64,000 nt of DNA from Salpingoeca rosetta (lineage: Eukaryota; Protista; Choanoflagellata). Where the stretch lies: the NCBI GenBank assembly GCA_033442325.1, contig JAWQFM010000005.1, forward strand, positions 1,071,058-1,135,057, read 5' to 3'. The notes beneath the pieces were generated by a model that was not told where the DNA came from, did not search any database, and saw only the letters and a program-made list of their open reading frames with translations. Below, piece by piece: positions 47,800-64,000 of the stretch. The stretch's first letter is position 1. Each line of letters begins with the position of its first letter. A program made the translations under genes and the position numbers.

Positions 47800-50700
47800 A
47801 TGAACGCAGTGCCACCGGCTGATCAAGTGGACGCCCTCTTCGAAGATGTTCTTGTGAGTGAAACCCTCCAAGCAGACGCAGTCATATGTCTTTGCTTGGT
47901 GGGGGCGACGAGGTGTGCGTCTGCCTGCACCCGCCACATACTGTGCATGCATACTACGCATGCAGGTGATTCTCACCCAAACATGCGTGCTTGTACGACA
48001 TGACACTGGGTGGCATGACAACAACAGCGCGAGTTGAATGTGCCGAAGAGCAAGCAGCAGGCGTTGCGTGAAAAGCCGCTGATGGAGAAGTGGCAGCTCA
48101 TCCAGGCCCACAAGCAGGTGCGACGGGTGGCTATCACGCCGCTTGCAGTATGCACGATTTCATGTGTGTGTGTGTGCGCGTGACGTGCACATACACATAC
48201 ACATGCACATACACATGCACATACACATTGTGTGAACACGTGTATGTGCATGTATTCACATGTCTTCACCCCGCCCCAAAACACACACACACACACACAC
48301 ACACACACACACACACACACACGCACGCACGCACGCACACACACACACACACACACACACACACACACACACACACAACATAGGTGCAAGCAAAGCACGA
48401 GGAAGAAGACGGGGATGAGGTGACGCTGGAGAAGCGGCTGGATAACATCAAGTGCGCGCTGGAGGACGATTCCGACCAGTCCATCGAGACGTGCACGCGG
48501 GAGCTGGAGAGCCTCGCCGTCGCTCTTCGCTCAAACCCAATGAGGTGCGAATCCTGAGTTCAAGTTGCCGTTGAACATGGTGGAAAGCAATGCCACTGCT
48601 TGTACTTCTGTCACCTTCGCTCGAAAAGCCGCAGGCTTCGCCACACCATATCCGACTGCATTGACGTGTCACTGATGGTTCCACACGTGTATCGCATGCC
48701 TCACATGTCTGCCGTGTTGTGGACAGCTTCATCGAGCAGTTTGTGGGGTTGGACGGCCTGACGCTGCTGCTCGACATTCTCGTCTCCATGACCCCCAATC
48801 AGAGGTGTGTGTGTGTGTGTGCGTATGTGTGTGTGTGTTCGTGCGTAGTTCTGTCTATCAGCCACTTGCGTTCGTTCCTTCTCTACGACTGTCCTGTTCC
48901 CTTTCGCTTGCCGCCCGCTTCTATGCGTTGGTGGTGAATGCATGGCTGGCATTGCGTGGTTCCCATCGCTGACGGCTGCCTGTGCGTTGCCGACTGACTG
49001 CCACTGGAACGAAGGCATTCGAACCAGCACCACCAGCTAATGAAGTGTCTCCAGGCGCTCATGAACAACGCGTACGGCCTCAAGTGCGTCCTCTCGCATC
49101 CAAGCAGCTTAAAGGTAGGCACTCGCGCTGCGGCAGGGCTCAGTACACCGCAGGAACACGCGCGCGTGTTGCATGACGAGAACTAGCGAGGAGATGCCTG
49201 TGCGCATGTGAATATGGCTCGTGCTTGATTTCTTGGCTCGGGCTTGATTTCTTGGCTTGCTGTCCTCTGTCACCCTCTATTTTTCGTGTACTCAACCGGC
49301 TGCCTCTGCTCTCTTGTGTGTGTGTGTGTGTGTGTGTGTGTGTGTGTGTGTGTGTGTGTGTGTGTGTGTGTGTGTGTGTGTGTGTGTGTGTGTGTGTGTG
49401 TGTGTGTGTGTGTGTGCTGTGCGGTTTTGCCTGTGCAGATTATCGCGCGGTCGCTCACGTCCCGTGACCAGACCATCCGTCTCATGGTACGCACCGCCCA
49501 CCACCACATGCCTTCGAAGCAGCCAAGCCAGCAAGGCAGACAGACAGACAGACACACGCACGCACAGATATTCTCAACCTCTCACTCAATACACGCAAAC
49601 ACACCCACCCACCCACACCCACACCCACACCCACACACACACACACACACACACACCACCACACACACACACACACACACACACACACACACACACACAC
49701 ACAACCTCCCCACAACCCCCAGGTGCTTGAGCTGCTGGGTGCAGTGTCGCTGCTGCCAGAGGGGCACCGAAAAGTGCTGGAAGCCATGACGGCTTTTCGC
49801 TCGTACGCTGGCGAGCTGGCGCGATGGCAGGTGTGAATCAGCGATTGTGTGGCTCTTTGGCTGTTGGGGTTGTGCGTGTGGTTTTGTGTGTGGCTTTATG
49901 CGTGTGTGTGTGTGTGTGTGTGTGCGTGTGTGTTGAGGGGTGTGTGCGGGATGTGAGAGACAGTCGGAAGGAACCGCCTGTTTGTGATGGATCAAGAAGG
50001 GGGGGGGGGAGGGAGGTGATTGCGTGGTGCGCTGTGTTGGCGTTGGGGTCTAAGGTGAAGAAGATGCGCACTATTCGTGCGTAACTGGACGTGACGTGTG
50101 GCGCTCACGTTGCCCTTGGATGCAATCAGACGGTTGTCATGGAGTTGGCTCGCAAGACGCAGAACCTCGCCTATGATGCAGAAGCAAAGATGAAGGTGCG
50201 GCTGCTTTGTGCATATGTACATGTGCGTCTGTGCACGCATGCATGCATGCGTGGAGGTGCATGTGCACGTGTTAGGCTGCTTGCTTGCTGATCATCAAGA
50301 GAACAAGACACGAAGCTATGCCCCATCAACACCGCCAACTGTAACCACCACCACACACCACCATCACCATGACAGGTGCTGTCGCTGCTGAATGCGGTCA
50401 TCTGCGGCGGTCCCGGTCGCCGCTCCGTCGCGTTCCGTCTGCACATCCGCAACGAGCTTGAGGCGTTTGGTCTGCGCCAAATCCTCGCACAGCTAAAGTA
50501 CGTACACGTGTTTTGTGTGTGTGTGTGTGTGTGTGTGTGTGTGTGTGTGCGTGTGCGCGAGTGTGTGCGTGTGTGTGTGTGTGTGCGTGTGCGCGAGTGT
50601 GTGCGCGTGTGTATTGGCCTTGGGTTGCCGTGTTTCCGAACGGTGTCAGTACACCGCGCTACCTCATTCACCACCACCACTACCATGGCCACCACCATTT

Positions 50701-61700: not shown

Positions 61701-64000
61701 AACAAACAAACAAACAAACAAAAACAAACAAACAAACAAACAGAACAGAACAGAACAGAACAGAACAGCAAAACAAACGCACAGGCCACCTTCTTTTTGA
61801 AGAATCGAAAGAGCTTCTTCTTGCTTCGGGCCTGTTCCAGTTCATCCGTCAACGCCTCGCGCTCCTTTGTCCAGTTGTGCACCTGCTGTCGCAACTCTTC
61901 CTCCTTGTCCTTCAGCTGCGTGGTGCTCTGCAGTGACTTCACAAGCAGGTCTTGGTTTTGCTTCAGCAAGCTGTTAAGTTTCTCCACGTATGACGCGTTC
62001 TCTGCCTCCAAACTGGCCTTGATCTTCGTCAGCAGCTTCACTTTGTCCTGCTGCTTCAACTCCGCCGCGCGATGCTTGTGTGCTTCCCGCTCTGTGCGTG
62101 TGTGTGTGCGTGTGTGTTGGCGGGGGGGGGGAGGTCGGGTGAGTGTGTACGTGGGTGAATGAATGGATGTCCAATTTCGAATGCGCTTGCGTGAGCGTTG
62201 GGATTTGACGTTCGCCTCACAAGCAAGGTCACACGTGACCGGAACGGCAGCTGTCCATCACGTACCGAGTGTGCGCGCCTGTCGTCGCAACTTGTCGCAT
62301 TCGCTCACAAGCATCTCATTCTGCAGCAAACAGCACCCAACAAGAGTACATTTGCGTGAGCGTGGATGATCAGAAAGGGCATCAAGCGAAGCATGGTAGT
62401 CTACACACACACACACAGACATACACACACGCACACACACACGCACGCACACACACCGCACACTACAGGTCGCCTAATCAACAGACCCTGCTCACCATGT
62501 TGCTGATGTTGTCTAGTTTCTCGCGAAGACCAACAACCTCGTTCCTGTCATTGAGGAAACGCGTGGGCACAAGTGATGTGACATGTGATGGCACGCGTGT
62601 CGTGCGAGTGTGAGTCATGACGCGTTCATTCCACAAATTCCCATCATGAACAAAGAAGACGCGAGCGCGCCAAACACACATAAACACATACATGCACACG
62701 CACACACACATACACACACAGACACACGCGCGCACACAGAGGCACACACGTGTCTGATGATGTTGCGCGTGCTGCCTCGAGGGACTGCTTGAGCATGCTG
62801 TTCTCGCTCTTCAGTGCACTCAGTTCTGCTTGCAACAGCGACACGGCCGACACAGGTGACGACTGCTCGCTTGCGCCATCCTGCAGTGGTGGTTGAGATC
62901 GGGAGGTGGAGATGTTGCGTGCAGTGCGATGAAGACAGGTGGTGAGCGTGCATGTAGTGGCGAGGAACATCAACACGGCGCAACGCAACAGCAACGTGAG
63001 ATGAACCGATTTGTGCGGATTATTCAGCACACGCACACGAAGATTGAACAACAACAAACAACAACAACAACAGCAACAACAAACAACAAGGACAAGTGGC
63101 GCGTACGAATGCGAATTGGGAGGAAGATTTGGTGGCGCGGTCTGTCTGCGAGACGAGGGGACTGCCGGTTGCGCTTGAGAGCTTGCTGGATGACGGGGCA
63201 CGACGCGTGGCGAGCGGCGAGCTGTCTCGTCGGCTGGCAGCAGAGCGCAACAGCTCAATGTGCCGCTTCGCAAGCGCCATGTCCTGCACCATCGTGGCGA
63301 GGGGCGGTGGTGGGCACACGAGAGCATGTGGTATCAGCCGTGGTGGTTCACAACGACGACGACGACGACGAGGAGGAGGAGGAGGAGGAGGAGGAGGAGG
63401 AGGAGGAGGACGAGGAGGAGGACGAGAAAGAGGAGGTGAAGAAGAACGAGGAGGAGGAGGAGGAGGAGGAGGAGGAGGAGGAGGAGGAGGAGGAGGAGGA
63501 GGAGGAGGAGGAGGAGGAGGAGGAGAAAGAAGAAGAGAAGGAATGTACGCGCACACACACGCAGACACACGCAGTAGGGCGTGCGCACCTGCTTGAGCTG
63601 TTCGTTGTGTTCTGTTGCCTCCTTGAGCCGCGCCTCCAGCGTCTTGATGCGCCCGTCCTTAAGTCGAACACCGCGCTCAAACACATCCCCTGTCACCACG
63701 TGTTCGCATTGAGGGGGGGGGGGGCGTGGTGGCATGCGCAATGAGCAATGTGCATGCAGGTGAGCGGGATTGCGCGCATATGCGTGTGTATGAAGCACGA
63801 ACGTATGAATGTCTTCTTGTGGGCGGGTGGTGCCTGCGGTTTGCTTCGTCGCAATGCACTGTGCAGTAGTTGTCTCCACCACCACCACTACCACCATTGT
63901 CACCATCGTCATCGTTGTGCGTACCAAGCTTCTTCTCGATGCTGAGCGGGGAGGCAGAGGCCGCGTTCGACTTGAGTGACGCCACCTGCTCCTGCAATGA
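58780..64000 (-). CDS. CCDC88: Girdin/Daple (CCDC88, Hook-related) family protein, 3' part; 5' end lies outside the window
   Basis: Coiled-coil exons end in [40 protein letters not shown]...[10 protein letters not shown]...[11 protein letters not shown] (62091-61790), matching recalled Girdin [39 protein letters not shown]...RRQKEKLEEKI. A disordered tail follows, with exons 61540-61476, 61197-60174, 59970-59836, 59515/59518-59508, 59339-59173 (or 59245), 59079-59025 and 58825-58780, ending [11 protein letters not shown]-stop. Confidence 0.82.
59640..59798. repeat. (AAAC)n tetranucleotide microsatellite, intronic
   Basis: About 39 AAAC units with two single-base slips, in the intron preceding the 8/11-nt microexon of the CCDC88 gene. 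Confidence 0.9.
63354..63525. repeat. (GAC)n/(GAG)n trinucleotide tract, probably intronic
   Basis: Lies between the CCDC88 exon ending ...NEQLKQ|gtgcgc (~63588) and the next exon (~63337 or below). Confidence 0.75.

Follow-up and report, generated by a model that had tools for sequence, protein, structure and literature searches.

A DAAM-type formin gene and a CCDC88-family gene lie tail to tail in Salpingoeca rosetta, most likely by coincidence

In animals, DAAM formins and the CCDC88 proteins (Girdin/CCDC88A, Gipie/CCDC88B and Daple/CCDC88C; Girdin in Drosophila, GRDN-1 in C. elegans) act in the same processes, namely planar polarity, apical actin and cilia, and for this reason cooperation between the two families is biologically plausible even without any linkage of their genes. 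Both are also families of Dishevelled partners. In the DNA studied here, a window of 64,000 nucleotides from the choanoflagellate Salpingoeca rosetta, a gene of each family lies next to the other in an organism in which Dishevelled is reported absent, and the question raised by this locus is whether the arrangement is a trace of a shared, pre-animal function or an accident of position.

The plus-strand gene is the formin PTSG_01821, whose sequence string is the same as that of PTSG_01821 in the supplement of PMC5628938, and the minus-strand gene is PTSG_01822, which encodes a CCDC88-family protein of 1300 aa; the two accessions are consecutive. Their coding sequences converge on opposite strands and end 862-863 bases apart (863 in the NCBI annotation of GCA_000188695.1), so that RNA reads and annotation both agree with the predicted tail-to-tail stops at 57917 (plus) and 58780 (minus), about 860 bp apart. 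An ATG open frame at 47614-48003 probably puts the start of the formin coding sequence near 47614 and not at 47800. The features of both genes are collected in Table 1. The annotated formin product has 1113 aa and is spread over many short exons, with CA/TG microsatellites filling the introns. PTSG_01822 ends on a TAG stop at 58780-58782 (cta on the plus strand), the joints from 58825 to 59025 and from 59079 to 59245 are shown by loose ends of RNA reads, and translation of its three terminal exons, all with RNA support, gives exactly the C-terminus of the database protein. RNA reads were examined over 57471-59639, and the joints of PTSG_01822 above 59640 rest on annotation and tblastn. RNA depth is absent over 59369-59639, and a (CAAA)n run at 59640-59781 is intronic.

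Table 1. Features of the two convergent genes, in window coordinates
Feature	Position	Strand	Evidence
PTSG_01821, CDS span of DAAM-type formin	47614..57917	+	End: RNA and annotation; start inferred from ATG open frame and N-terminal exon
Drf_GBD exon (Rho-GTPase-binding domain)	49016..49117	+	Pfam PF06371, E 2.4e-07, 30.9 bits
Drf_FH3 exon (DID/armadillo part)	50376..50498	+	Pfam PF06367, E 2.7e-09
Proline-run exons (FH1 region), limits approximate	53152..53716	+	Poly-proline in open frames 53152-53469 and 53531-53716, read from sequence
First FH2 exon	54094..54387	+	Pfam FH2 E 2.9e-18; PDB: DAAM1 78.8 bits, FMNL3 30.7, mDia1 29.4
Central FH2 exon	55691..55834	+	Pfam FH2 E 7.1e-17; PDB: DAAM1 55.9 bits, mDia1 33, FMNL3 26.7
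Later FH2 exon	56088..56219	+	Pfam FH2; sole PDB match DAAM1, 28.8 bits
Penultimate formin coding exon, putative DAD-like acidic/leucine motif, then basic residues	57471..57658	+	RNA depth 30-62; DAD by eye
Last formin intron, GT..AG	57659..57870	+	Joint crossed by 25, 7 and 36 reads (three stranded RNA runs)
Last formin coding exon, basic tail, TGA stop 57915-57917	57871..57917	+	RNA and annotation
Formin 3' UTR, several ends from ~58150 to 58400	57918..58400	+	Strand-specific depth and molecule ends
3' UTR of CCDC88-family gene, including (GTT)n run 58706-58772	58420..58779	-	Strand-specific depth; repeat scan
PTSG_01822, terminal coding exon, 14 full codons and stop; motif W-F-E-F-G-K-V	58780..58825	-	RNA loose ends at 58825; matches database protein end
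Penultimate coding exon of PTSG_01822	59025..59079	-	Consensus sequences of loose read ends, at 58825 as well as 59244, run into exon; splice sites
Third-from-last coding exon, Ser-rich	59245..59339	-	RNA depth 10-29; tblastn of residues 1236-1268
Coding exon, residues 1188-1233	59836..59973	-	tblastn of database protein
Large exon, disordered C-terminal region, ~residues 842-1189; GBA-like motif 60942-60962 (residues 925-931)	60171..61223	-	tblastn; motif scan
Coiled-coil exons, residues ~523-825	61790..64000	-	tblastn of database protein, window and extension; gene runs past the window end to 69873 in extended coordinates, where HOOK_N is encoded

Three stranded RNA runs from one study show that each gene is transcribed from its own strand, with a formin/CCDC88 depth ratio of ~1.1 to 5.4 over the runs. 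The 3' UTRs of the two genes come together near 58400, the formin UTR reaching ~58350-58420 and that of the CCDC88-family gene covering ~58420-58779, and a few reads of both strands share bins at the meeting point; any overlap, read off 73-base depth bins, looks to be at most ~100-150 nt and of low depth. Abutting, perhaps slightly overlapping UTRs of this kind could in principle couple PTSG_01821 and PTSG_01822. The gaps between neighbouring genes at the same locus are 569 and 1419 bases, and the 862-base gap is thus typical for the locus and ordinary for the compact S. rosetta genome.

Judged by its sequence, PTSG_01821 is a DAAM-type Diaphanous-related formin and the sole DAAM-type formin of S. 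rosetta, a single copy where vertebrates have two DAAM paralogues. We compared the formin exon by exon with Pfam and the PDB and took its tree placement from published work, in which PTSG_01821 falls within the DAAM clade in maximum-likelihood trees of both FH2 and DID-DD (Pruyne 2017, PMC5628938). Pfam matched Drf_GBD and Drf_FH3, the Drf architecture, on exons as well as on the annotated product. Four exons matched FH2, the best of them at E 2.9e-18, and so did the product. Among solved formins human DAAM1 was nearest to the FH2 exons and the top PDB match for each of the three compared, at about twice the score of the next formin (79, 56 and 29 bits per exon, against 31, 33 and none). Domains, exon scores and published clade together support the DAAM identity originally predicted. 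Like animal DAAM1 and DAAM2, the protein has a GBD, an FH3/DID region, FH1, FH2 and a C-terminal DAD-like segment with a basic tail.

The assignment of the second gene as a Daple/Girdin homologue stood as to the CCDC88 family, and not as to Daple itself. All named matches of PTSG_01822 were Girdin or Daple. Scores of its N-terminal 200 residues were 87-101 bits with fish Girdin, Daple and CCDC88B and with a Girdin-like protein of a mussel, 66 bits with one of a wasp, and 42 bits with a HOOK3-like protein, so that the similarity to HOOK is about half of that to CCDC88. Residues 22-167 match Pfam HOOK_N (E 1.5e-10), and a long coiled coil comes after this domain; single N-terminal exons, of ~25-35 residues, gave no Pfam match, and a representative search that used the long open frame at the C-terminus returned only the protein itself and low-complexity noise. 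In our tree five choanoflagellate proteins formed a clade (SH-aLRT 98) that was sister to animal CCDC88 (99), while vertebrate Girdin, Daple and CCDC88B formed one clade (SH-aLRT 100) without any choanoflagellate or invertebrate protein. This was a quick tree with one HOOK outgroup, and the split between HOOK and CCDC88 rests on scores and motifs. An identification as Daple specifically is ruled out, since the vertebrate paralogue clade leaves the choanoflagellate proteins outside, and PTSG_01822, unlike Daple, branches ahead of the Girdin/Daple/Gipie duplications. On these comparisons PTSG_01822 is present in a single copy, branched off before the duplications and is co-orthologous to Girdin, Daple and CCDC88B jointly. 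Databases label it merely 'hypothetical protein' or 'HOOK N-terminal domain-containing protein', and we place it here as the choanoflagellate CCDC88 orthologue.

PTSG_01822 resembles animal CCDC88 proteins in its HOOK_N head, which bears the family signatures S-P-L-V-x-W and L-V-D-G-I-F-L-N, in its long coiled coil and disordered tail, and in ending with W-aromatic-E-aromatic-G-x-V, although it is shorter, at 1300 aa against 1500-2000 aa. It shares with HOOK1-3, the dynein-dynactin activating adaptors, the HOOK_N fold followed by a coiled coil (PDB Hook1 42 bits, Hook3 31 bits), but HOOK1-3 are ~700 aa long and lack its long disordered tail and C-terminal motif. That motif, W-F-E-F-G-K-V, is a predicted PDZ-binding-type motif of the CCDC88 kind; the protein of Salpingoeca urceolata ends in W-Y-E-Y-G-E-V, and Daple and mussel Girdin-like proteins end in W-Y-E-Y-G-C-V, the last three residues thus being G-K-V in PTSG_01822 against G-C-V in animal CCDC88. 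In animals the C-terminal element binds the PDZ domains of Dishevelled and Par3 (PMC8042451). The strict GBA consensus, [LIMV]-[TS]-[LIMV]-x-[DEQ]-F-[LIMV] (PMC4760084), is absent from PTSG_01822; a GBA-like motif at residues 925-931 agrees at 6 of the 7 positions and has Gln at position 1, where this consensus calls for an aliphatic residue, and it stands ~375 residues from the C-terminus, compared with ~360 in Daple. Most invertebrate CCDC88 proteins are without the GBA motif (PMC4760084), which is no requirement for membership.

The absence of Dishevelled from choanoflagellates, on which the original prediction drew, agrees with published work. Dishevelled was not found in S. rosetta by TBLASTN at E 1.0 (PMC4818920), and a survey including 21 choanoflagellates lists it as a core animal-specific family (PMC6040629). 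Our own six-frame searches of the S. rosetta genome found 7 FH2 loci and gave no match to Pfam DIX and Dishevelled, but HOOK_N and HOOK3-like queries missed even the known PTSG_01822 locus by the same method, so these blanks are no evidence of absence.

Conserved linkage, whose lack the original note had named as a refutation of its idea, was not found in the one other genome compared, that of Monosiga brevicollis. Neither a formin gene nor FH2-like sequence was found within 10 kb either side of the M. brevicollis CCDC88 orthologue, and tblastn of the formin exons against this locus, 10 kb each side, gave nothing below E 0.03. Among the neighbours there are genes for SAICAR synthase, HMG-box, FKBP and ankyrin proteins, at gaps of 244-1260 bases, and in M. 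brevicollis ~3,460 accession numbers separate the two orthologues. As no flanking gene is common to the two species, synteny is eroded in general, and in S. rosetta a functional linkage specific to its lineage is conceivable.

We conclude, with a probability of about 80%, that PTSG_01821 and PTSG_01822 are ordinary convergent genes, each transcribed on its own, and that their 3' ends abut by chance. The adjacency looks coincidental because both families predate animals and the genes are not neighbours in M. brevicollis. That the arrangement is itself functional, with the transcripts regulating each other by interference in transcription or by antisense overlap and with selection keeping the genes together, is very unlikely. 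The meeting of the UTRs, the few both-strand reads in the same bins and a formin/CCDC88 depth ratio that varies inversely among the three runs would fit such a role, but the pair is not together in M. brevicollis, touching UTRs are expected with 0.5-1.5 kb between genes, any overlap looks short and very low in depth, and three runs of one study are too few to show regulation. An error in one of the orthologies is also very unlikely. In that case the formin would be no more than a generic DAAM/FMNL/MWHF super-group formin, or PTSG_01822 would be a divergent HOOK. Our own placement of the formin uses exon scores, our CCDC88 tree has a single HOOK outgroup, and DAAM, FMNL and MWHF go back to a single ancestral formin (Pruyne 2017); against this, S. 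rosetta has separate DAAM, FMNL and MWHF genes (Pruyne 2017, PMC5628938), DAAM1 leads the next formin about twofold per exon, and PTSG_01822 scores 100 with CCDC88 to 42 with HOOK at its N-terminus and carries a C-terminal motif seen only in CCDC88.

Chance adjacency leaves aside how the two proteins might work. A DID-DAD contact keeps a DAAM formin autoinhibited until a Rho-family GTPase opens it at the GBD, whereupon the FH1-FH2 dimer nucleates and elongates unbranched actin filaments. Whereas animal DAAM1 and DAAM2 have Dishevelled to relieve autoinhibition, S. rosetta is reported to be without it, and for this reason PTSG_01821 would be opened by Rho GTPases or other DAD-region partners. 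A HOOK_N head serves HOOK and CCDC88 proteins as the contact to dynein or microtubules. PTSG_01822 joins such a head, through a long dimeric coiled coil, to a disordered tail with the GBA-like and PDZ-binding-type motifs, and since the Dishevelled partner of animal CCDC88 is reportedly missing, the C-terminal motif may dock on another PDZ protein. It is possible, though unlikely, that both proteins work in one pre-animal polarity pathway of G-alpha, a PDZ scaffold, Rho-formin actin and a dynein adaptor, into which Dishevelled was inserted later in animals, the adjacency being incidental. The presence of both Dishevelled-partner families where Dishevelled is reported absent speaks for this, as do the element for Dishevelled and Par3 PDZ domains (PMC8042451) recognisable at choanoflagellate C-termini and the Daple-like distance of the GBA-like motif from the C-terminus. 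However, in animals the DAD region also has Rho and DID as partners and the PDZ-binding motif has Par3 and further PDZ proteins, the GBA-like motif misses position 1 of the published consensus and is at most a candidate for G-alpha binding, and across the three runs the two genes do not track each other in expression. A fuller proposal, in which DAAM and CCDC88 cooperated before animals, a PDZ scaffold on the CCDC88 motif and G-alpha on the GBA-like motif placing Rho/DAAM actin at the collar or basal body until Dishevelled took the docking site, with the touching 3' ends adding co-regulation in S. rosetta, is distinctly improbable.

That DAAM and CCDC88 are pre-animal and Dishevelled animal-specific has already been published, and the general idea that Wnt-pathway effectors are older than the animal-specific core is also in the literature. 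The only new element here was the adjacency, which failed the comparison with M. brevicollis and gives no support to a pre-Dishevelled polarity module, which is an idea only. Usable additions are the RNA-verified 3' gene models for PTSG_01821 and PTSG_01822 and the placement of the latter in the CCDC88 family. If the module were real, it would show how a core animal signalling adaptor became attached to cytoskeletal machinery older than itself, and because S. rosetta is genetically tractable this idea would be open to experiment.

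The plus-strand gene PTSG_01821 encodes a formin of the DAAM type. The Pfam domains Drf_GBD, Drf_FH3 and FH2 are each matched by single exons and are also carried by the annotated product of 1113 amino acids; the stretch from FH3 to FH2 contains proline runs, and a putative DAD-like motif followed by a basic tail was recognised by eye at the end of the protein. In the alignment that accompanies Pruyne 2017 as a supplement (PMC5628938), the row 'Sro PTSG_01821' reads the same as the translated first FH2 exon. When the FH2 exons were scored one by one against all solved structures in the PDB, human DAAM1 was the best match for every exon tested: 78.8 bits for the first exon versus 30.7 for FMNL3 and 29.4 for mDia1, 55.9 bits for the second versus 33 for the next formin, and 28.8 bits for the third, for which other formins were unlisted. 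The published FH2 and DID-DD trees place PTSG_01821 in the DAAM clade, and the same study reports separate FMNL, MWHF, INF, FMN, PHCF and DIAPH-like genes in S. rosetta, as well as DAAM genes in Monosiga brevicollis and Capsaspora (PMC5628938). On the published tree and the exon-by-exon scores together, the formin is probably a DAAM orthologue, as had been proposed.

The minus-strand neighbour, PTSG_01822, has a product whose C-terminus matches the NCBI protein of that name residue for residue. Its long C-terminal open frame found a single real match among 1.8 billion representative proteins, the 1300-amino-acid database protein P0001, which is spread over at least 18 exons across the window and its extension and carries HOOK_N at residues 22–167 (Pfam). 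When the N-terminus of P0001 and an N-terminal profile were used as queries, the named matches were all Girdin, Girdin-like, Daple or CCDC88A/B proteins, apart from one HOOK3-like protein that scored far lower; four choanoflagellate proteins (from Choanoeca perplexa, C. flexa, Salpingoeca urceolata and M. brevicollis) were also retrieved. When the first 200 residues are compared, fish Girdin, Daple and CCDC88B and a mussel Girdin-like protein score 87–101 bits, a wasp Girdin-like protein 66 bits and the HOOK3-like protein 42 bits; in the PDB, P0001 scores 42 bits with Hook1 and 31 bits with Hook3. The scores of P0001 against animal CCDC88 proteins lie in the same range as those of invertebrate against vertebrate members.

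A maximum likelihood tree was built from the N-terminal 480 residues of 18 rows (LG+G4, rooted on a single HOOK); in it the five choanoflagellate proteins form one clade (SH-aLRT 98), with all animal CCDC88 proteins as its sister group (SH-aLRT 99), and the split into Girdin, Daple and CCDC88B falls inside the vertebrates (SH-aLRT 100). Since it has only one outgroup, this tree alone cannot separate HOOK from CCDC88; the distinction in favour of CCDC88 comes from the ratios between scores and from two motifs specific to the family, one at the C-terminus and one at residues 925–931. Judged by sequence, PTSG_01822 is a pre-duplication CCDC88 orthologue. It had been called a Daple/Girdin homologue, and while scores, motifs and tree bear out the family, the Daple label has to be dropped, as that split arose within vertebrates. 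Coleman et al. (PMC4760084) already reported that, of five unicellular holozoans, three have ccdc88. The M. brevicollis gene model MONBRDRAFT_29521 (10001–16299 of the CCDC88 locus) yields a protein that begins within the HOOK domain, without the S-P-L-V-x-W start of its relatives; the model has probably been cut short at the 5' end.

P0001 ends in W-F-E-F-G-K-V, the S. urceolata protein in W-Y-E-Y-G-E-V, and Daple and mussel Girdin-like proteins in W-Y-E-Y-G-C-V, the S. urceolata ending differing from that of Daple solely at −1. Trp is invariant at −6 (the seventh residue from the end), Gly occupies −2 in four of the five choanoflagellate proteins, and the final residue is Val in every choanoflagellate, Daple and mussel protein compared and Ala in two wasp proteins. 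The last seven residues are kept from choanoflagellates to mammals, suggesting that the Dishevelled/Par3-docking element of CCDC88 predates Dishevelled.

The motif at residues 925–931 is GBA-like and fits six of the seven positions of the published GBA pattern, so that P0001 does not match the strict pattern; its distance from the end is about 375 residues, versus about 360 in Daple. A [QE]-[ST]-[VA]-x-E-F-L string of this kind occurs in four of the five choanoflagellate CCDC88 proteins, 70–375 residues from the C-terminus; no such string was found in the CCDC88 gene model of M. brevicollis. All of these strings fail position one of the pattern, and those of three of the four proteins fail position three too. 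The mismatch is irrelevant to membership of the family, because most invertebrate CCDC88 proteins lack a GBA motif.

Three stranded RNA-seq runs were mapped to 57471–59639, and 57500–59600 was also read directly. Loose read ends of the CCDC88 gene at 58825 enter 59025 onward and those at 59244 come out of 59079, which proves two splices; the three terminal exons, translated in frame, give the C-terminus of the database protein. RNA reads, frame and NCBI annotation, in which the two coding sequences end 863 bases apart on opposite strands, agree with the stop coordinates and the spacing of about 860 bp in the original prediction. This gap is ordinary, as nearby gaps in the same locus measure 569 and 1419 bases. 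The proposed extents need two changes: the formin coding sequence probably begins near 47614, and the CCDC88 gene runs past the window end to 69873 (extended coordinates), where the HOOK domain is encoded.

Features of the two gene ends and nearby repeats (window coordinates; P0151, P0203, P0204 and P0205 are other CCDC88-family proteins, P0204 that of M. brevicollis)
Feature	Position	Strand	Evidence or comparison
Last formin intron, GT..AG	57659–57870	+	Skipped by 25, 7 and 36 reads
Last formin exon	from 57871	+	RNA reads and frame
Formin stop, TGA	57915–57917	+	RNA reads and frame
CCDC88 terminal coding exon with C-terminal motif	58780–58825	−	Compared with P0205, P0151, P0203, P0204
CCDC88 stop	58780–58782	−	In-frame translation
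GBA-like motif	60942–60962	−	P0151 residue 902, P0203 residue 914, P0205 residue 881
Microsatellite (CA)55, intron	57361–57470		
Microsatellite (CAAA)n, intron	59640–59781		
Microsatellite (GTT)22, 3' UTR	58706–58772		
Microsatellite (GAG)26, intron	63448–63525		

The formin 3' UTR is about 250–500 nt long with several ends, RNA depth reaching about 58350–58420, and minus-strand reads of the CCDC88 gene span about 58420–58825, so that the two transcripts abut near 58400. At 58347–58492, where the convergent 3' ends meet, a few reads from both strands share 73-base bins, and a short antisense overlap of the transcripts is possible there. The window is 1071058–1135057 of contig C5 in a 55.4-Mb genome; introns in the window are rich in CA/TG microsatellites, and the long microsatellites in the table are perfect. 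Such repeats make long spurious open frames, so the '635-aa ORF' at 59526–61433 is coding only in part.

Searching all six frames of the whole genome for Pfam DIX and Dishevelled gave no match; the same method missed a HOOK_N domain that is surely present, and a six-frame whole-genome search with a HOOK protein as query missed the known HOOK domain again. The Pfam search recovered seven FH2 loci (one each on contigs C5, C10 and C12, two each on C11 and C18) versus the eight or nine S. rosetta formins of Pruyne 2017, a gauge of its sensitivity in an intron-rich genome. Finding FH2 and missing HOOK_N means that the search sees long exons and misses domains split into 30-residue pieces, and because HOOK_N was missed we do not count the DIX/Dishevelled blank as evidence of absence. 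The expected lack of Dishevelled does hold on the literature: TBLASTN at E 1.0 detected no Dsh in S. rosetta (PMC4818920), and a comparison with 21 choanoflagellates counts Dishevelled as one of 39 core families specific to animals (PMC6040629). Frizzled was not found in 23 choanoflagellates (PMC12716839).

The original prediction read the neighbouring genes as possible effector parts of a pre-animal polarity module onto which Wnt/Dishevelled was later grafted. Conserved linkage was not found in M. brevicollis, where the gene for the CCDC88 orthologue P0204 (XP_001750034), on a 432-kb scaffold, has no annotated formin within 10 kb on either side; its annotated neighbours there encode SAICAR synthase, ankyrin, BTB, Asp/Arg hydroxylase, HMG-box and FKBP proteins and several without a family. 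Eight formin exon pieces used in tblastn on this locus gave nothing below E 0.03. The M. brevicollis DAAM (XP_001746576) stands about 3,460 accessions from P0204, while the S. rosetta pair has successive locus tags and successive accessions (XP_004997801, XP_004997802); accession order presumably follows genome order. The genes flanking the S. rosetta pair (Metallophos and ARMT1-like) are likewise missing from the M. brevicollis CCDC88 locus, and with no flanking gene in common local gene order is generally scrambled, the formin–CCDC88 pair not having been protected from this. In humans, DAAM1 and CCDC88C are separated by tens of megabases on 14q.

In three RNA runs of one study, which prove little, the formin had about 2.4, 1.1 and 5.4 times the depth of CCDC88, which gives no sign of tight co-regulation; depth at 57471–59368 was about 62, 33 and 53 for the formin and 26, 29 and 10 for CCDC88, with no tracking. 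With dozens of partners reported for Dishevelled and many windows being read, a neighbouring pair with some common annotation would be expected by chance. The adjacency is most likely a coincidence.

The earlier interpretation is partly supported, in its orthology and in the absence of Dishevelled, components already known from the literature; joint action of the two proteins is hypothetical. Domain content, splice structure, own-strand expression of both genes and family placement are direct observations. From what is known of the families, the formin would be autoinhibited, opened by Rho, and would nucleate and elongate unbranched actin filaments. The CCDC88 protein would be a dimeric coiled-coil scaffold whose head binds dynein or microtubules, and whose disordered tail would dock PDZ proteins via its last residues and perhaps G-alpha via the GBA-like motif. 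Without Dishevelled, the formin DAD region and the CCDC88 C-terminus would use other partners, since the same C-terminal motif in animals binds Par3 as well (PMC8042451).
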